Under the pieces are notes generated by a model. That model did not search any database. It was not told the origin of the DNA and saw only the letters and a program-made list of their open reading frames with translations. Below are positions 290 to 45,264 of a DNA stretch of 64,000 nt, in pieces; positions within the stretch are counted from its first letter, which is position 1, and each line of letters begins with the position of its first letter. The stretch comes from Bugula neritina (taxonomy: Eukaryota > Animalia > Bryozoa): NCBI GenBank assembly GCA_964035545.1, contig OZ037767.1, forward strand, positions 22,646,628-22,710,627. Direction: 5' to 3'. A program made the translations under genes and the position numbers.

Positions 290-719
290 ACTAATGTACT
301 ACTAAAATCCACACAATAATATAATTAATAGACTATTAAAAACCCTTACAATATTACCATAAATTTAATGGTGCAAGTAAAATACTAATTTATTGTACGG
401 TATACTTTATTTCTAGTAAACTACAAGAAACATAAAATGCATAAGATACATTAATAGTGTGTATTTTATTTTCCGTACTGTGTAGTTACCTCTGAAAAGA
501 AAGCTACATACATATATGAACTATCTCGCAAAATATCAAGCAGCTGGAGAGCTGTTGAAATACTTCAACTCACTTAAAAATATTCATACTTCTAATTTCA
601 ATAGCACAAAAATTAATGCAGTGTCTTAAAAATTTCCCGCAGTAATGTGCAGATGCAAATAAGTTAAGCTGGAATAAAACAGTATTGTGAAATATGTTTA
701 AGTAGCGTTTTAAAACTGT

Positions 720-3700
720 TTACTGCACTGCACAGCGGTGACTTTTTGGCACTTTATCAGAGGACTTGAAGATATTTCGAAGAGCAAGTCGTTTGTTCAT
801 GGTGCTTCTAAATTCTGGAGTTTGTTTAACTTCACTTCCTTTAATCATTTCTGTTGTTTTTAGGAACACTCCATATATATCATCATTCTGTTCAGAATTC
901 TGTAAATTTTCAGCTAGTTTTGGTATAAATACCCCTCTGTAAGCGAAATGACCATTGATAGTAGCAGATAGCACAGCAAAATCTGGGCCAGGCAAATCAA
1001 AATGAGCAACTGCCCTATCTAATAACGGTTGCGGTGGCCTGGGATCTACAATAAAAACACTAGCATTACATATTATAAAGCTTGAATAAACAAAACATTT
1101 GAGTTTGTCACAAAATAGCATGACATTTAACCAAATAATTGTAAAACATAACTTGTAGTGCACAACTTAGTCTTAAAAGGATAATTTTGAGTATATGAAA
1201 TCATTTGAAATTTCTAAAGTATACTGTGCATGGTGAAATAAAAGCTATGTAGACATTTAAAGATAATTATTATATTATGCTCTTGTTGTGATAAACTATT
1301 AAAATAAAGAGTCATATTACAATACCATGTGAATTTTTTAAAGGTATTATTTAATTAAAGCAAACTTTAATTATATGAGATCATTTAAAAAGGATCATTT
1401 ACAAAGTAATATAAAATTGTACATAAGTAAAATTTCTACTAATAATGTAACTTAAAAAAACTAAATATCAAATAGAATATGTGTATTTGAAATTACTATA
1501 CTTACCAGCAGATGAGTGTGCAAGAAGTTGCCTTTCGTGCATTTGACATGCTTGAACAATTAGTATCTATAAAAAACAAGGTACCCTGTTATTGAATAGC
1601 CTATATAATATTTATTATACATAAAGTCAGGATCCTCGAAGCCCCTGTGGTGTAGCAGCTAGCACGCCCGTTAGCAAAAAAAGCCTGTGGTTCAAATCCC
1701 AATTGGGGCAAAGGTTTTACAGGCTATGTCAACCTTGTGTTGCGAAAGTACTCTTAGGGAGTTAAGTGGCGAGTGGAGCCTATAAACCGACAGAGTACAA
1801 GGGGGCCAGTGCAGTTCTAGAGAGACCTGGGTGGGATGTTGTTAGGAATTCCAAAGCTCCTGTGGTGCAATGTTTAGCACTTCTGCTCGCAAGCCAGAGG
1901 TCTGTGGTTTGAATCCCATTGGGGGCAAAAGTTTTACACATGAGTTATTTACAGAGAGCTCTGATCAAATCTTTTGTAAGGCTACATGTTGGTGTTTCAA
2001 AAATAATATACTTTTGTCAGCATGTATTTCGTTTTTGACAACTTTGTACTTTGATAAAGGTACCCACCCACCTTTGGTTTATCATCTAGCTTTGGATTCT
2101 TCATTTGCAAAAGGATATCATTTATAGATAACCTCATATCATCTTTTGCCAAAACGCATCCTTTGTCTCCATGGCCCATAAAAGCAAGAACGAAACCCGA
2201 AATATCATCTGGTCTTATGGCTTCTAATATTTCTTCAAATATTTGATCTCGTGTCAGATCTCGATGGATCCTTGGTCTTATTTGAAATTGATCGTTCATG
2301 GTTTTCTGAAAGGCTTCCTTCTCACTTTCGGCACCCTCGCGGTCTTCTGTGATGTATATGATTGATACGATTGGTGCTGTTGGAAAGTAGTAGTAACCTT
2401 TTTGATTCTTGGCCCAACTCAATAGGTCTTGGATCTTTTCAGATGACCAAGCAAGCTGATGTGGGGTTTTTTTGTATTTGTTCTTTAGCTCAATAGATCT
2501 GCTGCGAACTTCCTCATCGGATACACTGAGAATAGCTTTGACAAGGTCGTAATGGTTGAGTCTAGCAGCAATGTGGAGAATTGTGTCACCATTGTCATCT
2601 TGATCGAAAAGTTCGTTTTGATCATAATTTTCTGGAACATAAACCAATATAAAGATATGCAATTTAAGCAGATTTATCTAATCTGTAACACACATAACCA
2701 CCAAATATTGTGATAAAACTAAATATCTAAATTATAAGAATACGACAAACTCCCACAGAAACAGCCACTGAAATCTAGCGAAGTTACTGATGAATGTACA
2801 TTTAGTAAGTACCTTGACTAACTTGTGCTGCCAATTCATTCAACAAATCAAGGTACGCAGTATGATTTGAATGAATTTCCACAAGGTAGGCTAGCAGAGA
2901 AATTCTTTCACTAAGTGTATTACTGCCTTGTTTTAGATGATGAATGGCAAGCACCTCTACGCTTTTGCCTTTCTTGTCTGGTACTCCAAACAGCTCTAAT
3001 TTTTCTTTTTTTTCTAAGCCTTCCAGCATGGCATTAAATATAATCGTTCCATTGCTGCCGATTGGAGCTTGGATAACCGTGCAATGATCAGAGTCTTTGG
3101 AAGACAACAATCGCATTCGCTGGTCGCTGGACAAATCTTGAAGCAATTGAATAACAGAGCTCCATTCTAATGCTTGATCTGTGAGAGATTTTAAGCTGTG
3201 CAGTGGACTGTTACCTTTCCCATCTTTGATTTGGCAGACTTTAAATCTTTGCTCGATGTCAACACATTGTAATAACATTCCGCTCATTTCTACATCATGG
3301 CTATAGAATGCCTCATGCAACATGGTTTTCTTGTTGATATTGTTGGGCACTGTTAAAAGTTGGTTCTTGTGGTCTTGAGACAGCTTAGTGAGAATATGTC
3401 TGACAATGATCAAATTACCACTTTTAACATCACTCTGGCTTGGTGTGCTGCCATATGTATAACTCAAAGTTGATAACAGCTTTAGTAAAACTAGAGAAGA
3501 TCCTGCAGCATCCAACATGATGTTGAGTGATTGTGTATACCCCTTTTTGGCAGCCATGTGTAAAGGACTCTCTCTGTTCAGTTCATCTGGAGAAAGAAAT
3601 AGATCCATTAAATTGCATCTGTATTTTTCTCCTAGGACATTATTTACTTGTTGGAAAACATCAAATGCATTGATTGAAGCGGCAACATGAAATGCAGTGT

Positions 3701-5291
3701 ATCCGTGATGATTCTTTTTGAGTAACAACTTGGTAATATCTGTCCACAGTAGTTCTCTAGCAACAAAGGTCTGAAGGATGGAACTCATAGTGGAACTATG
3801 ACCATTTTTGACTATAATGTGCATCACAGTTTGGTGGCTGCTTTTCAAACAAATAATTCTTTGCATACTTGAAGCATCAACACTGTTTAAGAGATGCTTT
3901 ACACAGTCAATTTTAGCTTCATCTTCAACAGCCAGCTGGAGAACTGATTTGCTATTCTTGTCCAATTTGTTTATAGTTGACACCAGTTTATCTGGCTGAA
4001 TGGCTTTCAGTAATATGGCTAACGTAGCTGGATTGTTATTCTCTGTCGCTACGTGGAGAGCATTCTTCTGACTTGTGTTTGGTTGTAAAATCAGATTTGA
4101 TGGGTTTTCTGCTAATTGTAAAAGAAGGGAAACAAGCTCAGGATTTCCATTCGCAGCTGCTTTATGAACGATTGTCTCATCTGATGCAAGCTTTTCTGAT
4201 ACTAACAAATTCTTCTCTGATTCTTCTAAATTTCTGTTTAAAACTGTTAAAACTTCAAGCCACTGGAACTCTACGATCTTCTCTAAAAGAGTGCCATTAT
4301 CGTGGGCAGCCTGATTATTTATCCACAAAACCCTTTGAGATGAGTCAACCGTTTTAATGAAGGAACAAATTGTAGTTGGACAAACAACATCATTTTTATC
4401 TCTGCACAACTCATCAAATGATGCAGTAAAGTTCCTAGTTACTTTCTCAGCAAGCTGATTTGTTTTAAGGTGGCTGCTAGAGAGTATTGCTTCTACACAC
4501 TTGACTTGGTGTTCAGAAATAGCCAGTTCCAGCGCAGTCAGCTGATCAATATTTTTTAGCATCATTACCTCCAGCCATGTTGAATCTTCTAGCTTGTCTA
4601 GCATTGCAAGAATTTGTGCTATGATATCAGCTTGTCCATTTCTGGAACAAAGATGCAAGACATTTTCGCTACGACTTATTGATCTTTTTTCAACCCAATG
4701 TAAATTTTCCTGAGCTGTCAAAGTTGAAAGTTGGGGAAGGACTTTGCTTGTGATTAGTGAATTATATTGTACCTGGTTCACCATTTTGTGAATTGCAGAC
4801 TCCCCTGTATTATCCAGCGAATTGAGTAGAAGAAGAAGATCTGGTGGTTTGAGGTGTTTTAGCATGCACCAAACCACTGTATCTGAACAGCTTTCATCTA
4901 GACATTTGTTAATGACAGTTTGCCTGTGTTTAGAATGATCATTAGTGATAAGCAGCAATTTAAGTTTTTTACTATACTCCAGCCCTTCTAGCAAACAATT
5001 CACTGTTTCAATGCCACCATCATTGGCAGCTAAATGAAGAACTGTATTTCCAACAGCATCGACGGCTTCTAAACATGGCAACAACTTGTACGTTTTCAAA
5101 AAGTCAACAATAACAATTATGTGCTGGGAAAGGTTGTGGGAAGCTAACCAATGTATTAAATTTCTTCCTCCTTCTTCAGTTCGGTCTATCACAAGCCTTG
5201 GATTGGCTGATTCATTCAATAACTTTCTTAATTCCTCAGGTTTCTGAGAGCCAATGGTCTGGTGGCTTGACAAGTGTGTAAGGCAGGACAT
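720..5291 (-). CDS. Ankyrin-repeat caspase (~1141 aa): ~20 ANK repeats + caspase p20/p10 domain
   Basis: Coding exons 5291-2813, 2631-2072, 1566-1506, 1045-720; GT-AG introns in phases 1,0,1; total 3426 nt. ANK motifs GNTVLHLAA, GYTAFHVAA, RESPLHMAA, GDTILHIAA. Caspase motifs DREGAESE, FMGHG, KPK|ILIVQAC, DFAVLSATINGHFAYR, KQTPEFRSTMNKRL. Confidence 0.9.
1641..1940 (+). mobile_element. Two tandem tRNA-derived SINE heads in a caspase intron
   Basis: Related segments starting at 1641 and 1856, each with an A-box-like TGGTG(T/C)A and a B-box-like GGTT(C/T)(A/G)AATCC, followed by ggggcaaa(a/g)gttttaca. No intact cloverleaf evident. Confidence 0.55.
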
Positions 5292-6129
5292 TATAAGCTA
5301 AAATTATTAAAATAAAAACAATACAAACAGCAATTTATCAAGGTTATTATGGTAAGCTTGTTCGAGTATATTAATATATAATTATAAATCATCTATTGGT
5401 TACACATGTTGACTATTAATTCATATACAATTTAGGCAATATGTACATAGTGATATAATATTCTGCTGAACACAAATGTGATCATCACTGTGAAATACAT
5501 ATTTTTCAAATAAATAATTTACCATAGATTTGAAAATGATAATAGCTGTAAAATTGGCATAGCAGTGTAACCACTACACCAATTGCTGTTCTGGCATAGC
5601 TTACTATGTATACATTATAATGAATCACCACAAGTGTAAATAAGCTTTTACCATTACAACATTTCAGTGAGAGAACCTACTGCAGGCAATGCATTCAACA
5701 TGTAGATCACTTCGGTTGCACAATGCTTATATAATAATATGGTTTCACAGGGCAGCTCTTTGAAAACTGCTCTTTAAACCCTTTCAACCTTGTGACTAAG
5801 TGTGACAAGTGTTACACTAACTTTTGAAATACTTCTGTCTTATAAATATTATATGTAGTGTTGCTGTAAGTTTCTTAGTTGTATTGAACTAATAAATAAT
5901 TAGCATCAATTAAAGGATATAAAATGTGTGGCACTGGCTGGTATTACTAAGAAATGAAATTGTTGCATAGTAGACTACGAGTAACAGCTGTCACCTTCCA
6001 TCCTGTATTATAGTGCTATAGATGTATTCAAGTATTGTTTTATATTTGACATTTTGTATGCTATACCACTACAATATAATATACTACAGATATAGCATCC
6101 TACTTCCCTGCAACCTTAGTTAGGGCTTA

Positions 6130-6473
6130 GCCTAGAGCCACACGGTGCGCATTTTCGCATGCGAAAATTGAAATCACAAGTAGCAAAGGTGTCCACTGTA
6201 ACGTCAGTGATGCGTGATAAATAAAGCTTTCATTTTTAAATCGCACTCGCTTTCAATAAAACGCAATTTACTGGAATGTAGCACTAAAATAAAGAAATTG
6301 GGCTCGCTGAATAACTACCAGCCAATTAGGTGACGACGACAGAGACGATTCGCACTTGCGTTGAAAATGCTGATCGACAAGTGCGAATGTTTTCTCAACG
6401 CGCACAGTAGACAACTTTGCTACTTGTGATTTCAATTTTCGCATGCAAAAATACGCACCGTGTGGCCCTAGGC
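6130..6473. mobile_element. PIF/Harbinger-type MITE, family A copy 1
   Basis: ~70-bp TIRs (GCCTAG(G/A)GCCACACGGTGCG...), TTA on both sides, near-identical to three other copies in the window. Confidence 0.9.
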
Positions 6474-6606
6474 TTACTGGAGATGGTACATCATTAGCCC
6501 TAAAAGTATACTTCTACATATGATGTTTCGCAACAGGACTTCTAGCCTAAGGATTATAGCACTTCGCTCTTTAGCTATAAGATACTTATCACTTTCGTAC
6601 CCTTAC

Positions 6607-17247: not shown

Positions 17248-18470
17248 AACGCATTGGAACTATGTGTAATGACCTACAAAGGCAGTAGCTCATTGAGCTG
17301 TTGGCATCACCTTATGCAGCTCACATTGATTGGCAAAAAAGCTACGTTTAAACACAAAAAATAACAATTAGACTAAACATTACGTGAATGTTTCAAATGA
17401 TAACTTAAAATGCAAGTATTTGGTAAAAATATATAAAGTGGTGGAATCATAACCAATTTACAATAACTATCTCTTTTCATTCATATTTGTTATTTGACAT
17501 TTAAATATTTTCGATTATAATCTAAGTCAATCTCCTGCTTAGCACTAGTAGTCATATTATAGTACGGCATAGTCATACCGATACTCATAGTAATAGTCAT
17601 AGTGCCCATAGACTTAGAGTTAGATCATCACCATGGTACGTTTACTATTACTAATACTGATATTACTAATATTGCCATAATAATTTATTAGTATTAGTTG
17701 CAACTCTCATTCTTTGCCTAGTATACTTAATACTTCTACTAAATGTAATGATACTTGATAGTGTTATTATAATTATTGCGATTAATATTCACATGTTCAA
17801 GATTCAACATTTTGTATCTCCAAGCTTTGGAACTGTTGTAGTTGCAACCCGCTCTTTGACAGCAAAGTTCTCAAATAGCTTTCAGAATAGGCAAATTTGA
17901 CTGTTTCTTAGACCAAAAAGTCTAAATGTAAAAACTAAAGCTTTCCAAAGATTACCACCTATCAGGATACAAAACATTGTTTGCCTCTAAGACTCTGGTT
18001 TAGAAAATTAAATCGGAGCCAAAGAAGAGCATAAACACGGAGTTCACAGCCTGCTGGTTTGAGATTTTTGTGGTCCAGAGATTGTACTGGGTTATAGGGA
18101 TCTTTTCCCGTCTGCGAATTTTTGATCCCTGCGGTTGTTTCTGGCTGTGAGTGGTTGGAGGTGTTGAGGGAGTGGGCTCACTTGATAGGCTATATTATTG
18201 TAATCATATTAACCAACTCAACAGTTTACTAAGTGATTGACTAACTCTGTCTGTCTTTGACTAGTAACACTATTTATTTATTTATTTACTTATTAATTCA
18301 TTTAATTGATCAACTCTTGTCTGTCTTTGTCTAGTAACACTATTTATTTATTCATCTATTTATTTACTTCCTAGTCCTTAAAGTTACTATTTACTAAAAA
18401 TTCTCTTTGAAAAAAAAAATAATAAAATTTAACGCTGTCTTTGGTCATTTTTGAAAATAAAAAACAAAGA

Positions 18471-19412
18471 ATGACGAAAACCAAAAGGTCAGAATCAACC
18501 TCAAGTACTAGCTCATCAACAGCTAAATGTACCCAGAGGCAGAGTGCTATACTTAATTCTACTCCGGGACCTACCGTGTCTCAGGCGATGTGTGAAAAAT
18601 GTACTAAAAAAATAGATGATGAAGATGAAGGCACCCTGTCAATTGAGTGTGAAACTTGTCTCAATTGGTTTCATTTAGACTGTACTGATCTTATGAAGCA
18701 AGACCTAAACACCATTACGAAAAAGGGTATTCATTGGTTTTGTGACCAATGTGAAGCTGTGGCATACCCAAATTTTATAACCAGACTTAAAGCCATTGAA
18801 TCCCACATTGAAAAAAGTTACGATCAAGTAATGGGTTCATTTCATAATCGCATGACTGCTGTGGAATCTCAACTAACTAGCTTATTTGAGAATCATGTTT
18901 CCAAAAGTGAGAAAACATTTGCTTCGGTGGTTGCAAAACTGGAAGATTCCACTACAACAATAAATAAGCAACTAAAGAACCAAGAAGTTCAAATTAAATC
19001 TATCAAAACAGAAATTTCTAGTGAAAGCAGAGCTAAAAATATCATAGTTTTTGGAATTTCCGAGGAACACGACACTACTTTAGATGAATCCATAGGTAAA
19101 CTCTCAGAAGTTTTAGATTCATGTAGTCTCAGATTTCACGCATCAAGAGATAATGCCACAAGATTAGGACAAAAAAAAGTTGACAAGATTAGACCCATGA
19201 GACTAACACTAGCTTCAGAAGTTCAAAAATGGGAATTTCTAAAACGCATCAACGCTCAGAAAATAGAAGGAGTCTTTGCTCGTCTTGACTTGAATAAAGA
19301 GGAACAAGAAAAGGATTTTCAACTGAGAAGCGAGCTGAGGGAATTGAGGCAGAAAAATCCAGAAAACAAGTACAAGATAACAAACGGGAAGATAATAAAA
19401 GTAAGACAGTAA
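18471..19412 (+). CDS. LINE ORF1 (PHD finger, coiled coil, CR1-type C-terminal domain)
   Basis: CEKC...CETC..WFH..C...WFCDQC PHD pattern; RAKNIIVFGISE and RPMRLTL motifs; frame intact. Confidence 0.85.
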   Translation: MTKTKRSESTSSTSSSTAKCTQRQSAILNSTPGPTVSQAMCEKCTKKIDDEDEGTLSIECETCLNWFHLDCTDLMKQDLNTITKKGIHWFCDQCEAVAYPNFITRLKAIESHIEKSYDQVMGSFHNRMTAVESQLTSLFENHVSKSEKTFASVVAKLEDSTTTINKQLKNQEVQIKSIKTEISSESRAKNIIVFGISEEHDTTLDESIGKLSEVLDSCSLRFHASRDNATRLGQKKVDKIRPMRLTLASEVQKWEFLKRINAQKIEGVFARLDLNKEEQEKDFQLRSELRELRQKNPENKYKITNGKIIKVRQ

Positions 19413-19426
19413 CACATGATAATCGG

Positions 19427-22161
19427 AGAATATTAACAGTAAATGCGAGATCAGTAAGGGGGAAAATATTGGAGATTCAAACCCTCTCCGTTGAATACGA
19501 TATCATTTGTATTACTGAAACACACCTAGATAATGCATTTTTGAATTCTCAATTGTTTTCTCCCAAAGACAAAGTAGTATATAGAAAAGATCGTGATTCG
19601 CACGGAGGTGGTGTATTGATTGCCATAAATGTAGAAATTCCCCATAAGCTAATCAGGTGTGAAACAGAAGCAGAAGCAATCACAGTATGTTTTAGACTGG
19701 ATAGCAAGGAATATTGCAATCTTACTTGCTACTATTGACCCCCTTCTTCACGTGACATGAACTCATTCTTTGAGTACATGAAAAATATTCACACTAAATA
19801 CTCAACAAGTAGAAAACTCAAAACCAGTGATTTTAACCTTCCAGGAATCAATTGGGAAGATACTGGTCTTTCAACTTGTTGGAGGACATACTATACTGAC
19901 TTTCGTAATTTTCTAAATGATAATAATTTGGAACAACTTGTTCATAAATCTACGCACATAGCAGGCAATATATTGGATCTCATCTGTACTGACTTGTCAT
20001 ATAAAGTTCAAAGCACAAATGTAATAACACCGGGTATTAGCGACCATTTCATGATAGAAACGGTCTTGACTGGTAAAGTTGAACGGAAAAAGAAACCATC
20101 TATCCCCCCAACCAAGCTATTTCACAAAATCGAACTCGGCGGGTTTACAACTGGTCTAGATGAGTTGCTTTATACTATTAAAAACAAAGTGATGTTGAAA
20201 TATGATATTAATGTTATATGGAATACATTTAAGACTGAATTACATAGACTTGTTGATTCATATGTCCCAACTAAACAACGTAAGCCTAGAAATCTACATG
20301 AGCCTCTCTGGTTTAATGATGAAGCCAGACGGGCATGTGAGAAACAGCGAAAGTTTTACAACCGCTTTCAAACGTCTGGTGATGCTGATCACTTGGCTAA
20401 ATATAAAGAATTACGTCGCCATAATAAAAAATTATATAAAAACCTAAAAGCATCTTTTCTGGTGAATCGTCTATACCAACCTCTTTCCAGTGGCTACACA
20501 AAACCGTTTTACAAATATGTTAAAGATCTAAAAGGGAATGATAATGAGATTACTTCCATAGAAAACAACGATGGTATCTTGACGTATGATAAAACTAAGA
20601 TATCTAACACTCTGAATGGTTTCTTCTACAGTGTATTTACCACTCCATCACCTCTACCAGAATTACCATCAGTCACTGAGAAAGATAATATAGTGGTAAC
20701 TAAAGAAGGAGTTGTGAACCTGCTGAGACAACTTGTACAAGGTAAAGCTCCTGGAGTAGATGGACTCACAAAGAACTATCTCACAGTAGACTTAGATCGA
20801 ACAGCAGAAATACTGGTGTGTATTTTCAATCATTCACTCAATACAGGAATAGTGCCAGATGACTGGAAGACTACAAATGTAACATCTGTGTTTAAACAGG
20901 GTAACCGCACTCTAGCTTCCAACTATCGTCCAGTATCACTAACGTGCATTTGCTGTAAAATTCTTGAACATGTAGTTCTGCATCATTTAAACACACAATT
21001 GGAAAATTTGATACATGAAAACCAACATGGTTTTCGCCGCAACTTTTCATGTGTTACTCAGCTTGCTACTGTCAACCATGATATATTAAGGCATATAGAT
21101 AAAGGACATTTTGTAGATGCAGTTGTGCTAGATTTTTCTAAAGCCTTTGATGTAATTGACCATCATATTCTTGTAAAGAAATTGATATTGTTAAAAATAA
21201 ATCCCTGCATTATTCGATGGGTTTCATCATTCTTAACTGGACGCTCACAACGAGTGGTCATTGACGGGGTATCTTCGGACTTAGCACCAGTGACTTCCGG
21301 GGTTCCACAAGGAAGTGTGCTGGGTCCAACATTATTCGTTTTGTTTATTAATGACATTGTAAACTGCGTTACACATAGTACAATCAGGCTTTTTGCTGAT
21401 GACACTCTTGTTTATCTACCCATTACTGATCCAAATGATCATCATAAACTACAGGGAGATCTTTCTAGACTTTATAGGTGGGCAAAAGAAAACAATATGA
21501 AGTTCAACTCAAAGAAAAGTAATGTCATCACTTTTGGTAAGAAAACAGAAAATATGGAAAATGTCTTCACTTATAAATTAGGAGAAGATCCCCTGAATAG
21601 AGTTGGAGTTGTAAAATACCTTGGAATATTGCTATCAGCAGATTTGAAATGAAATAAGCATGTCGAAAATATCATATCAAAGGCATACAGAGTACTAGGT
21701 TTAATCAAGCTCACACTAGGAAATGCCCCAGAAAATGTTAAAATTCTTGCGTATAAAACTCTTTGTAGACCTCTCCTAGAATATGCTGCTGAAGTATGGG
21801 ACCCATGCAATAAACATCTAATAACAAAATTAGAAGTTACCCAAAATAGGGCTGTATGGTTCATTAAAAATTTAAAGGGTAGAGAAGTATCGGTAACAGA
21901 TGCCAAAATTGACCTAGGACTAGAAACATTAAGAAAGCGCAGTCACAGAGAATTTCTTTGTTGTGTCGTATTGCTGCAAATAATGATTTATTTCCAACCT
22001 TAAATAACACACTTAAATCTATGAAATCCTCAACCCATAACATGAATACCCGTATTAACACTTTCAATGCTATAGCCTGCGATTCGAGCCTGTACCTGCA
22101 GGGTTTCCTGTTGCGCACTGTCCGGGAGCTCCGTACGGGAGAGATAGTAGCGGATTTCTGA
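19427..22161 (+). pseudogene. LINE ORF2 (APE-RT), disrupted
   Basis: In-frame TGA at 19736-19738 (YY*PP, expected YYRPP) and at 21650-21652 (LK*NKH, expected W); frameshift near 21950; GDFN altered to SDFN. Confidence 0.85.
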
Positions 22162-40606: not shown

Positions 40607-40903
40607 CCGCCCCCCCAACAGAAAGCCCTACTTTCTGATAACACAATACAAAAAAAACACATAAAGAAAAACTATACAATAATCCAAAAAGAAAAACATA
40701 CATAAGTAAACCCACAAAGAGGAAGAAGAGAAATAGTTGAGCACGACAACATTTATATACAGAAGTAAACAGGGTGATCGAACACACACATCTAGTCAGC
40801 TATAAAGAGAGAGGGTGCTTACCAGCACGCGGGCCAATGTCGGAGCACTCGTCACTTTCCAGACGAAATACAGCTCAACGAAAGGTGCCTACCCCAGGCA
40901 TAC

Positions 40904-41961
40904 TCATTGGGTGGACTCTGACTCTTGTAGCGAGCGTGCTCTGTGTCGAGCCTGTCGGGCACGTAGCCGCCTCTTCAGTCGCCCCACTGAGTCCTTCAAC
41001 TGGTATAGACCTGTCGTCGTATCCAGCAAGTCAGGGGCAAGTTGTGTGAACTCGGCTTGTAGTCTTACAAGCCGCTCTTCTACATTAGCCAGCTGGCTAG
41101 GCCTTGGCGGGGTTGTAGTAGTCTCTGTTAGAGGGGGTATTGTTGTTCCTTCTAATTCGGGGGTGTTGCTAGGGTTGACGGGGGTAGGAGACGGGCCCTG
41201 AACCATAGGGGACTTATGGCGGGCGGATAACAGCAGTACTTGGAACCCTGACGCTAGTGCGGCCAGGGTGATAGCCTTCCTGATGACTGGCTTGATGGCA
41301 TCCAGGTATTGGGGGAAACTGTCCTCATCAACAGTATGGTTCTCTCCGGCGAAGCAGCTCAGCTTATGGACTGTCACGGGATACGGGTATACGTCGTGGA
41401 ACCCGCATGGGCAGAAGTGGAGTAGAAAATGGGCGTCTACATGTAGACGCAGGGAGCGGTGTGACGGGCACTCCTCGAAGCAGACCTGGCAGGTTCGGTG
41501 GGGTCCGCTGGGTCCCCAGGCTTCCTCAATTCTCCTTTCCGTCGTGGGTGACACCCAGCGGTGTCGTCGACGAAGCACCACGGGTATGCCATTCTCCATT
41601 ACAGGTTCCTCTTCCATAGGCAGAGAGGTTGGCTGGTCCCGTGACCGGGAGGTGGTCACTCGAGTGTGATCTGAAAGAGTAGCAGTGTTAAAGATTATAC
41701 ACTGAGGTACCGTCGGCGTGTACAGCCTGACCGGTACGCTGTTCAGTTACACTCGTGAGATTCAGGCTAATGAATAGTTGATGGAGAACACACTCGCTAT
41801 GGCAGATTATTTAAAATCAAAGTCGACGTGTATTCCCACCACTGTTTATCATTATCGAATCTCCAGCTCGCTAGCTAATGTAGCTAAAGCTGACTGATGC
41901 AGTCTAGTTATCGTACCAAAAACATAATTAACTCACCCTTCGATCCAGAATAGTAAGACAT
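40904..41961 (-). CDS. Retroelement accessory ORF3 (~263 aa): C2H2 + C2HC zinc fingers, coiled coil, basic tail; spliced
   Basis: Mini-exon 41961-41937 (ATG...AAG G|gtgagt) joins in phase to acceptor ctctttcag|AT at 41670 and to the 251-codon ORF ending at 40904. Fingers C-x2-C-x12-H-x3-H and C-x-C-x12-H-x3-C. Confidence 0.7.
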
Positions 41962-42309
41962 TTTGGAATGAGAGCGGTAAATGATTACTGTTTAGTGGCA
42001 CGTCTACTCTTGACTGCATCAACGTAGGAAAAGACCGGACAGCGTGGTTGTGAAACGTGACTATGGCTTTTCACTTCCAGCGGATGAATCTCGTGTGAGA
42101 TTCCGACGAGGCAAAAGTTGAGATTTCCGTGGTGTTCACAACTCCCACGTCTCTTTGCCTGTTTTCCCATGCGAGGCCTCTCTAGACTTTCGTTACTGCC
42201 GCTTATACCGCGGTCACGTACACAGTCTCTGAGACACGCTGGAAGTTGCCTAGTGTGTGGTCCTGGAGGCGTCGTCACTGTGGGAGGCGGTGTGCTCACC
42301 CGTGGATTG

Positions 42310-44333
42310 TTATGTCTCACGGGTGGTTTTTCCAGCCTGTTTGTGACGGTTGTTCCTACGTTGGTATCTCCTTGCGGAGCCCCTCCCACGAGGGGTTTTT
42401 GCACTTCCGGACCCGTTTCCGGTTCCGGAAGTGGTGGTGATGGCAGGCTTGACGTTGGGGGCGGTGGGCGCACTTTCAAGGACGGAAGTGGCCTTTCTCG
42501 CCTCGCCAAGTCTTCCTGAGGTGTCATGGAGGTGTTTCCGGCCAGGACGACAGTCTCCGCTTGCCAAGAACCTTCTCGCACAATGCGTCTGCCGCCCCGC
42601 TTCACCAGGGAGACGGCTATGCTTGTTGGTCTGGCAGACTTTGCACCGTCTCACTCTGCGCCGGATATCCCGCTCCATGTTGGGCCAGTACCACCGGAGT
42701 TGTAGCTTGGTGACCACCCCTTGGACTCCTCCGTGAGTCTTCTCCTGGGTGTCTTGTATCAACTCCCGGCGGATGGCAACTGGGCAGACGACCCTCTTCC
42801 TGGCTGGCTGTCTGCTGTTGGCGGCCAAGGTCATGGTCAGCAGACCATCTGGCCCGACCCGCAGAGAGTTCCAACGTTGACAGTACAGCCGTAACTCGGC
42901 GCATCCCTGTCGCCGTTGTTTACTACTGGGTCGTCGCCCTTCCTGTTTCGCTCGGTACACGTCGGCTACCACCCCAGGAAGGCTTTCCTGGAGCTTCGGC
43001 AGCTCCCTAACGTTACCAGCCCATACAGGTTTGGCGCGGAGGCTCTGGACAGCCTCCGGGGGCGTGTCAGCCCTCTGTTGGAGTTGCTGAGCAGGGGCGG
43101 TCTTCGCCGCCCGTGGTACCTCACGACAGCCTGCTCTATTTAGGCGGGCGTCGTGGTCTGTGTGGCGGAACGCCTCACTGTACCCATGTGGCAACCTAGC
43201 CATAGCCTGGCGCTTTCCGTTGCCTGTGCAGCCACGCGTCCCTGGAGGATGGGAGGCGTGGGTTGGGACGGTCCTCCGCCCTTGAGACGGGCTCTGCTGA
43301 GGACCTTCCGTCGTAGCTCCCGACGACGCCCCAATGGCTTCCTCCTGGACAGGATGGAAGCGGCCCAGCATGGACCTGGGTGGTAGGTCTACTGTCTCTG
43401 AGGAGGGGTTGACACACTGCACTGAGATCTCTCCTTGTCCCGTAAGCCGGCTAAAGCTATGGGCAAGTTGGACTCTCGAGTGCGTACTTTCGACAACTCC
43501 CAACTTAGAGGTTTGGCCACCGTCTACCTTGCAGCGGACGGTAGCCCGGGAGTGGCCTGGTATAGTACAGCTCCGTACTACCTGCACTGCTCCCGCTAGA
43601 GGACGACCAAACTTATCGACACAAGCGAGCTCCCTGTCGCCCATGATCATCGCAGATTTACTGAAATCGATGCGACATCTGTGTCGTTGTAAGAATGGCA
43701 TCCCGAGGATAGCGTCCTCGTTGAGCTGCCCGACGATAAACGTCTCTTGGATGGCCTGGTTACGGACGTAACCAGTCAGCTCAATAATGCCGTAGAAGGG
43801 AATGCACGACCCGTCTGCCAGGGTGCCATGATCCCCCTCATACGGTGCCAACCCGTCCTTGACCTTAGCGCTGAGGGTGTCAAAGAATTGACGGCTAAGG
43901 AGGTTGGTGGTGCAGCCTGAGTCCAGGAGGAAGTTGGCAGGCTTGCCGGCTAGCTTTCCTGGCAGGAAGTAGCTACTTCCGTGTGGCTGCAGCTGTGTGC
44001 GCCGTGGTTGCACCTCCCTCGCTGTGGGTCGAGGGGTCCACGGTTGGCGACGACTATTGACCAGCTGCCGAGGTTGGGGCGGTATGCCTTGCGGCGCCTG
44101 TACCGTTTCCCTCGCAGGCTCTGAGATCAACCGTCTGCCGGCTCCGTGTTGGTGTTGGAGTGGCGTAGAGGACCCAGGCGGTGAGTGGCTTGAGCCTACT
44201 TGCCGCGGGGGTCGCCACTTCACAGCATCTCTGCGCGGCGCCCAGCGGGGCGGCAGACGCGCGGGCCTCCCTGGGTGATTTACAGACGGCCCGCAGGAGG
44301 TGGGAACATCTGCGGGCCGTGGTAGTTTAACCC
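42310..44333 (-). CDS. Truncated pol: aspartic protease + integrase zinc-binding remnant; RT, RNase H and integrase core absent
   Basis: FLLDSGCTTNLL and AILGMPFL (protease); THGG...WYWPNM...CKVCQ (integrase HHCC-like remnant); no YxDD motif seen. Open in the -1 frame relative to gag. Confidence 0.85.
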
Positions 44334-45230
44334 TTGTTGGAGTTGAGGGCAGTTCCTCTGGAAATGTCCTGGCCTTCCGCATCCCCAGCAGAAGTTGTGC
44401 CCCATGCCTGGTGATTGTACCTGCGGCCCGCAAGGCTCACGGGCGGTATCTACCTGGCTTGGGGAAGCTAATGTGGCGACCAGTTTATCTAGCATGTCAG
44501 TCATCTGTGCGACTTTTGATGCTAGTGACATCTGGTTCACATTAGCCACCGCGGAGGGTTCCGCGTTTGGTTCGGTATGAGCAGTAGTGTGCTCCGTGGT
44601 CACCTGGCGGGAGGCCACGCGGTTGCGGTGCATATGAGTCGCCATGAGGTAGGCTTCTCCCACCGCAAGTGCATCTTCGACCGTGGTGACTCCCCTCGCT
44701 TGGAATTGATGGTGGAGCCCCAAGTCGTTGATGGACTGCACGAAGGTATCATAAGTATACCTCTCACGGTGTACTGGAGGCAGATCGCGGAACGCGATCT
44801 GCGCTAGTGGGTACACCGTGGCAGCGTGCTCTTGTAGCGACGTGTGAGGATCACGCCGCAGCCTTTGTAGACGGGCCCGCGCATCTATGGGGGAGATGCC
44901 AAAGCGGGCCCGCAGAGAAGCAAAGATTCCGTCTATGTCAGGTCCCGCTCCGTACGGCTTAGCCTTGTCCGTCAGCGCCATCCTGAGCTTGAGCAACGCC
45001 ACCCTTGGCGGCCACTGTGCAATCTCCATCACATCTTGGAATTCTTGGATAAACTGCTCCACTGCTTCTTCGCCTGTGAAGGTGGGCGCCTTCAGCCGGT
45101 ATCTGTCTTCACCATGCTCTCTAGGAATTCTCACTTCTTCTTCTAACACCACTGGTTCCACAGGTATATCAACATTATCTCTCTCACCTTCATTCAGTGG
45201 AATGAGTAGCTCCGTGCCGTCTTCTGCCAT
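44280..45230 (-). CDS. Gag with CCHC zinc knuckle
   Basis: KAPTFTG capsid-like start; CWGCGRPGHFQRNC knuckle; first ATG at 45230, just after the PBS. Confidence 0.9.
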   Translation of the reverse strand: MAEDGTELLIPLNEGERDNVDIPVEPVVLEEEVRIPREHGEDRYRLKAPTFTGEEAVEQFIQEFQDVMEIAQWPPRVALLKLRMALTDKAKPYGAGPDIDGIFASLRARFGISPIDARARLQRLRRDPHTSLQEHAATVYPLAQIAFRDLPPVHRERYTYDTFVQSINDLGLHHQFQARGVTTVEDALAVGEAYLMATHMHRNRVASRQVTTEHTTAHTEPNAEPSAVANVNQMSLASKVAQMTDMLDKLVATLASPSQVDTAREPCGPQVQSPGMGHNFCWGCGRPGHFQRNCPQLQQGLNYHGPQMFPPPAGRL

Positions 45231-45246
45231 GACTGCTATACGCAAG

Positions 45247-45264
45247 ATCCCACTGCTGCCACCA
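45247..45264 (-). other. Primer-binding site, tRNA-Leu type
   Basis: TGGTGGCAGCAGTGGGAT, 1 nt after the 5' LTR, complementary to the ...AUCCCAC(C/U)GCUGCCACCA 3' end of animal tRNA-Leu. Confidence 0.8.

Follow-up and report, generated by a model that had tools for sequence, protein, structure and literature searches.

A gene for a caspase preceded by an ankyrin-repeat array in the bryozoan Bugula neritina

The DNA described here is a stretch of 64,000 nucleotides (nt) from Bugula neritina (Bryozoa), positions 22,646,628 to 22,710,627 of contig OZ037767.1 (GenBank assembly GCA_964035545.1). We refer to the whole of it as the window, and count positions from its first letter. On the minus strand, at 720-5291, lies a gene of four exons with canonical GT..AG splice sites, in which an array of ankyrin (ANK) repeats is followed by a caspase: an ANK-caspase gene of the B. 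neritina complex. Its parts, in the order in which they are transcribed, are these:

5291-2813, minus strand: exon 1, with the ATG at 5291; 826 codons and one further base, encoding ~19 helical units of ankyrin type
2632..2812, minus strand: intron 1, 181 nt, GT..AG, phase 1
2631-2072, minus strand: exon 2; final ankyrin repeat, linker, and caspase large subunit (p20), which includes the S1 Arg of EDREG and the catalytic His; ends in KPK
1567..2071, minus strand: intron 2, 505 nt, GT..AG, phase 0; contains tRNA-derived SINE-like copies (SINE, short interspersed nuclear element)
1566-1506, minus strand: exon 3, a 61-nt mini-exon with the active-site Cys (ILIVQACQM)
1046..1505, minus strand: intron 3, 460 nt, GT..AG, phase 1
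1045-723, with the stop codon at 722-720, minus strand: exon 4; inter-subunit linker, and small subunit (p10), which includes the S1 Arg of FAYRG and a C-terminal motif, KQ.P...ST..K.L

Summed, the exons make 1141 codons in a single frame, with intron phases of 1, 0 and 1. An initial annotation, made by a model from the letters alone, had proposed that four exons splice into one open reading frame (ORF) of ~1141 amino acids (aa), and sites, phases and codon sum all agree with that proposal. With the splice boundary written as a slash, the donors are AAG/GTACTT (exon 1), AAG/GTGGGT (exon 2) and CTG/GTAAGT (exon 3), and the acceptors are TGTTCCAG/ for exon 2 and TTTTATAG/ for exon 3. An in-frame TAG stands at 5300-5298, immediately 5' of the ATG. 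CAT at 2173-2171 encodes the catalytic His of FMGHG, and TGT at 1548-1546 the Cys of QACQM, both where the annotation had placed them; and inspection of the mechanically made ORF list bears out its remark that the 61-nt exon with the Cys is missing from that list. Between the last repeat and the start of p20 there is a linker of only ~40 aa.

Transcripts follow the same course. Logan contigs from four public sequencing runs, labeled here X9, X1, X4 and X14, were placed on window positions 700-5320; X9 is RNA-Seq on record, X14 is a DNA-type run, and the RNA-type contigs are drawn from three studies. One X9 contig of 2514 nt is intron-free and runs 4004-2813, 2631-2072, 1566-~1509 and 1048-700. 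An X1 contig of 1511 nt has all three junctions just as X9 does, and X4 has the 2813/2631 junction together with the one between exons 3 and 4. Small offsets at the third junction arise from letters that fit on either side of it, and from divergence within exon 3; in X1 and X4, 27 inserted letters translate in frame to the 61-nt exon, with QAC retained. Introns 1 and 3 have a depth of zero in the RNA-type runs, and are covered in the DNA run, X14. The junctions that the annotation had singled out for checking, 2813/2631, 2072/1566 and 1506/1045, are thus all crossed by intron-free RNA-type contigs, and because exon 1 and the caspase exons meet in single contigs, its claim that array and caspase belong to one gene is upheld: one transcript carries both. 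Toward the 5' side, RNA-type contigs together span 2813-5300 of exon 1; the longest of them reaches no further than 5300, which is 9 nt 5' of the ATG, and the 5' end of the transcript is provisional.

These RNA-type contigs are 90–95% identical to the window. In the window's own genome, exon 2 occurs only at this locus and at three paralogues, the nearest of which is 35% identical in exon 2. With so distant a paralogue, RNA that is ~94% identical cannot have come from one, and a retrocopy is ruled out as the source of the spliced contigs, too, because the genome has no close second copy. RNA at ~94%, with the next copy in the genome at 35%, is instead what an orthologue from a sibling lineage would provide, and this is how we read it. 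The divergence of 6–10% suggests that the window genome, on the one hand, and the public RNA and GenBank data, on the other, come from distinct members of the B. neritina complex of species.

That divergence also permits selection to be gauged. The window was compared with L023, a genomic contig from another sample (SRR4020080) that is ~93% identical in nt, and the ratio of non-synonymous to synonymous substitution rates (dN/dS) was computed for each part. All frames are open in both sequences. For exon 1, dN/dS is 0.30, with a dS of 0.14; for exon 2 it is 0.13, in the ankyrin-linker part and in the p20 part alike. In exon 4, for which the list of differences is partial, there are nine non-synonymous changes and five synonymous ones, the frame is open, and the key residues are unchanged. 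By this measure the rate in the ankyrin exon is about double that in the protease exon, and both halves of the gene are under purifying selection, the ankyrin array less so.

The ankyrin part is easier to see in structure than in sequence. Exon 1 matches all of the Pfam ankyrin models (Ank_2 at an E-value of 2e-29), and exon 2 has a Pfam Ank match at aa 13-34. Pfam and a hidden Markov model (HMM) built from the best repeats of exon 1 itself recognize ~10 repeats there and a single one in exon 2, the remainder being degenerate. An AlphaFold2 (AF2) model of exon 1, made from a shallow, four-row alignment, is all-helical and without beta-sheet, with a mean confidence (predicted local distance difference test, pLDDT) of 73.8 and many blocks above 85. 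It consists of ~19 successive units, each made up of two ankyrin helices and a third helix, with a period of ~41 aa that exceeds the ankyrin canon of 33 aa. The count of ~20 repeats in the initial annotation consequently stands as helical units of the model, and does not stand as repeats recognizable by sequence, of which there are about half that number. Foldseek places the model closest to the 24-repeat solenoids ankyrin-1 and AnkB, followed by NOMPC, latrotoxin and TRPA1. Both the profiles (PF00023, PF12796) and the helix-turn-helix solenoid assign the array to the ankyrin repeats. Pfam finds neither CARD nor DED in exons 1 and 2, and there is no sign in exon 1 of a second, dead, caspase-like module: no C14 match is found there, and the model has no beta-sheet.

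The caspase part is spread over the remaining exons. Over profile positions 160-231, exon 4 scores 24.1 bits with Pfam PF00656 (Peptidase_C14), for which the cut-off is 21.4. The p20 of exon 2 aligns with human caspase-8 p18 (phmmer, E 1.5e-5), and in this alignment the S1 Arg, the catalytic His and the KPK fall into register; in caspase-8, KPK directly precedes the QACQG strand. With both residues of the dyad in place, the annotation's description of a complete p20/p10 caspase is justified. When the four paralogues are aligned, the Arg of EDREG, the His and the Gly are invariant. Six relatives all keep the p10 Arg (FAYRG), which in a profile search aligns with the S1 Arg of the SWR motif of caspase-7; exon 4 alone, searched against PDB sequences, has no match, and the caspase-7 alignment came only from the six-sequence profile. 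The C-terminal KQ.P...ST..K.L motif of p10 is kept. An Arg-Gln-Arg S1 pocket is the basis of caspase cleavage after Asp. In this gene the pocket (p20 Arg, Gln of QAC, p10 Arg) is complete and the His-Cys dyad intact, so that all of the residues for cutting after Asp are present.

The fold was approached through a relative. P0031, a 429-aa ORF for an ANK caspase that runs without interruption on a metagenome contig, is colinear with exons 2, 3 and 4 at its residues 108-270, 271-278 and 336-427, and its VLIIQSCQG corresponds to the ILIVQACQM of exon 3. The AF2 model of P0031 has a pLDDT of 79 as a whole and exceeds 90 within the protease, and its best structural matches are caspase-8, -7 and -3 (E 1e-13, template modeling score ~0.7); the fold so modeled is that of a homologue, not this gene's own. 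It supports a caspase fold for the family and hence, indirectly, for this gene.

Searches of the gene's own genome (216 Mb) with the exon 2 protein, the exon 4 protein and a p20 profile define a subfamily of four loci: this gene, and paralogues on C9, C8 and C2 that are 25–44% identical to it. These four are the only loci that the p20 profile finds at E < 1e-40; the next match is at 4e-6. Ankyrin repeats lie upstream of p20 in all three paralogues (weakest in C8), the p20 exons of paralogues match C14 at 42.9 and 25 bits, and an intron after the P-K dipeptide is common to this gene and the paralogues. The C9 and C8 copies (L020 and L021) have mini-exons of 58–64 nt with QAC. The C2 copy (L022, G000:C2:10636000-10645999) has ankyrin repeats and p20 in one 564-aa exon at 3968-5029 of that stretch, plus a p10 exon. 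Its Cys mini-exon was searched for and not found, and there is a (TG)n tract at the exon end; this paralogue may be a dead copy, or the Cys exon may have been missed or hidden by the tract. The GenBank protein KAF6039209.1 [Bugula neritina] is 89% identical to the C2 paralogue, and as a gene model it ends just after the catalytic His.

Outside this genome, an exhaustive search with the p20 profile returned 1060 proteins at E <= 1e-3, the top ones mostly exon-sized ORFs of ~200 aa ending in KPK; those of the matches that bear names are caspase-8 or Dredd proteins. Longer matches that combine ANK and C14 include Watersipora subatra XP_067937378.1 and a model from Sanderia malayensis. The first of these, from a cheilostome bryozoan, was found by the p20 profile and has ANK and a full Peptidase_C14, as does an XP paralogue; RefSeq calls it an ‘uncharacterized protein’. 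At 648 aa it is shorter than the protein described here, its active site reads QSC, and of the four loci here the one nearest to it is the C2 paralogue, not the gene in the window. The second (P0062, EukProt) is from a jellyfish, and in it ankyrin repeats accompany two caspase domains. A different arrangement occurs in P0106 (Daphnia sinensis KAI9564773.1), a ‘caspase 8’ with a protein kinase domain N-terminal to the caspase. Word-based protein searches were less telling. With exon 1 the candidates were swamped by generic ankyrin words, and the single match, a Logan exon-ORF at 91% identity, says little about spread; with the caspase region of the Watersipora protein, only that protein's own paralogue was found. 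To the questions of spread and paralogue number that the annotation raised, then, the answer is three paralogues in the same genome, and a relative of the same layout in Watersipora.

The caspase repertoire of this bryozoan is unusually large for a 216-Mb genome: there are at least 177 C14 exon matches. Dense clusters of p20/p10 exons occur at G000:C1:32.8-35.5 Mb, at C6:2.5-6.3 Mb and 12.7-15.6 Mb, and at C7:5.0-7.7 Mb. Large ORFs beside other strong C14 matches (L004, L005, L008 and L009) were considered as further candidates and set aside, being plain caspase p20 exons without ankyrin. The genome also has a DED-DED-caspase locus of the caspase-8 type (G000:C5:221375-227044), in which two DED exons adjoin caspase exons, and so this bryozoan retains a death-fold route beside its ANK caspases. 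A separate DED gene, possibly FADD-like, is present at G000:C1:6357006-6357248.

ANK caspases are not new as such. They were named in 2024 in a comparative study (PMC11463336) that reported them from parasitic platyhelminths, first in Schistosoma, and from the annelid Alitta virens; in its trees they group next to the DED caspases of the caspase-8 type. Flatworms that have ANK caspases were found to have lost DED caspases, and the conclusion was drawn that the design is essentially specific to parasitic flatworms and accompanies DED-caspase loss (PMC11463336). Bryozoa were neither sampled nor mentioned there, and a phrase search of the literature produced no further paper on the architecture. 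The present gene shares with the flatworm and Alitta proteins the replacement of CARD or DED by ankyrin in front of the caspase, and the affinity to caspase-8. In having ankyrin repeats N-terminal to a caspase in one polypeptide, without CARD or DED, it is an ANK caspase by definition. It differs from the flatworm genes in belonging to another phylum, and in that they occur where DED caspases have been lost whereas the bryozoan genome keeps its DED-DED-caspase locus. The novelty that the initial annotation implied for the fusion itself consequently falls away: the design had already been named, and Watersipora has a relative of the same layout in RefSeq. What is new is a small, separate, caspase-8-like subfamily of ANK caspases in Bryozoa, coexisting with a DED caspase, and of such proteins in Bryozoa the literature that we searched holds no description.

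With human caspase-8 and insect Dredd, the best sequence matches of p20, the protein shares the QACQ motif, the KPK that precedes it, and the S1 Arg, Gln and Arg; in structure, too, the protease domain of the family, as modeled in P0031, comes nearest to human caspase-8. But caspase-8 and Dredd have DEDs where this gene has ~820 aa of ankyrin repeats instead, the Gly of QACQG is Met here, SWR has become AYR, and sequence identity to caspase-8 is low, at an E of only 1e-5. By the same token, the gene lacks the death-fold pro-domain by which DED and CARD initiator caspases are recognized.

The interpretation that we favor, and hold to be probable though well short of secure, is that this intact and expressed gene encodes a cytosolic, single-chain ANK caspase in which ~20 ankyrin-type repeats take the place of DED or CARD ahead of a caspase-8-like protease. 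From its sequence, the protein would be an active, Asp-specific caspase of the initiator type. The solenoid would serve as a protein-binding pro-domain that recruits the zymogen to a putative partner or platform, and two protease domains brought together in this way would be activated by induced proximity. Auto-cleavage would perhaps follow in the linker that exons 3 and 4 encode, which contains Asp (…SSAD/P…LLD/R…HFD/L…). Such an enzyme would offer a parallel input to cell death or immune signaling, beside the DED caspase of the genome.

Several points weigh against this. The RNA evidence comes from a lineage that is ~6% diverged in DNA, not from the individual sequenced. Protease activity is a prediction from residues, and the partner of the ankyrin array is putative. 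Searches and models were run exon by exon (2814-5291, 2072-2629, 1507-1566 and 723-1043, minus strand), and exon 2 by itself has no Pfam C14 match. Nor is the active site altogether orthodox: the canonical QACxG is replaced by QACQM, the paralogues' QACQV and QACNK also lack the Gly, and in p10 a Tyr stands in for the Trp of SWR. QACxG is a typical feature of caspases and not a strictly defining one, and among relatives the motif reads QSCQG or QSCLT. With the Gly lost and Trp changed to Tyr, specificity or activity may differ from that of model caspases.

The initial annotation imagined something bolder: a one-chain sensor and effector, whose solenoid binds a pathogen or danger ligand, or else auto-inhibits, and whose caspase is released or oligomerized by the ligand with no adaptor in between. 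The long solenoid joined to the protease by so short a linker would suit such a device, as would the great number of C14 exons, which recalls the lineage-specific expansions of immune genes, and the faster evolution of the ankyrin exon. That exon's dN/dS of 0.30 is still purifying, however, and so is not the signature of an arms-race receptor; nothing in it points to diversifying selection. The subfamily comprises four old members, diverged to 25–40% identity, rather than a young, polymorphic array, and a tandem array of this gene was searched for within the window and none was found. Both the ligand and an oligomerization module would be putative. We consider this scheme unlikely.

Ankyrins anchor to membrane or cytoskeletal proteins, and the array might do likewise, tethering the caspase to such proteins for local, limited and non-lethal proteolysis, possibly during larval metamorphosis or the degeneration and regeneration of polypides. 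The solenoids closest to the exon 1 model, ankyrin-1/B and NOMPC/TRPA1, are membrane-binding ones, but structural likeness among ankyrin solenoids is generic. Transcripts in ordinary runs of three studies suggest constitutive expression, but contigs give no expression levels. Purifying selection on both parts agrees with the proposal, and we nevertheless think that it has rather little chance of being right.

A regulatory pseudo-enzyme would be another way to account for the divergent loop. QACQM would then mark a poor protease, serving the DED caspase encoded at C5:221-227 kb as a partner or a decoy, in the way of cFLIP; the Gly missing both here and in the paralogues, and the C2 paralogue with no detectable Cys mini-exon, would fit. 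But dead caspase-like partners normally lack the Cys or the His, and here His, Cys and the three S1 residues are all kept, Arg and His are invariant across the paralogues, and p20 has a dN/dS of 0.13. We regard this as very improbable. Scarcely any credence is due, finally, to an artefact of annotation, under which the locus would be a decaying pseudogene, or else a pair of neighboring genes, one with the ankyrin ORF and the other with the caspase exons: the GenBank Bugula neritina proteome has no full-length model in the length range searched, and the mechanical ORF list shows separate pieces, but single contigs span all three junctions, which contradicts two genes unless the contigs are chimeric, frames are open and under purifying selection in two lineages, and the layout recurs in the paralogues and in Watersipora.

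Here, then, is an ANK caspase in a free-living bryozoan, supported by RNA, constrained, and standing beside a DED caspase, in a phylum absent from the only comparative study to have named the class. Its occurrence in a free-living animal that keeps its DEDs shows that the range of the design had been drawn too narrowly, and that neither parasitism nor the loss of DEDs is a condition of it. The gene is also a practical first candidate for expression and activity tests, having 1141 aa, four exons and no second caspase module. More speculatively, a single ancient lophotrochozoan paralogue of caspase-8 might be the common ancestor of ANK caspases in bryozoans and flatworms, its DEDs replaced by a solenoid that acts as a direct, adaptor-free receptor, so that clustering induced by a ligand fires the protease. 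For membership in the monophyletic clade of the flatworms, the nearness to DED caspases that both share is no more than suggestive. The whole idea is quite doubtful; were it true, animals would possess a death or immune pathway without a death-fold platform, alongside the FADD/DED route.

The window contains repeats as well. Within intron 2 of the gene there is a tRNA-derived, SINE-like element at 1856-1927, plus strand (Rfam tRNA, 29.8 bits against a cut-off of 29), and a second, similar copy near 1690-1760. ARAGORN finds no tRNA in the introns, and the borderline Rfam match is read as the head of a SINE. Over this element the depth of contigs rises more than 10-fold in DNA-type and RNA-type runs alike, and the element is therefore present in very many copies genome-wide. 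At 6129-6474, some 0.9 kb 5' of the ATG, is an element resembling a miniature inverted-repeat transposable element (MITE), with terminal inverted repeats of 71 nt that are 93% complementary and 204 nt apart. The gene's neighbors in the window are a zinc-type dehydrogenase gene and retroelements. At 18441-21652, plus strand, two ORFs succeed each other, the first with a PHD finger and the second, of 631 aa, for endonuclease and reverse transcriptase, in the manner of retrotransposons without long terminal repeats (LTRs). At 40900-45250, minus strand, a GC-rich island (up to 58%, against ~35% around it) contains ORFs for a gag zinc knuckle, an aspartyl protease and an integrase, and is an LTR element of the Gypsy type.

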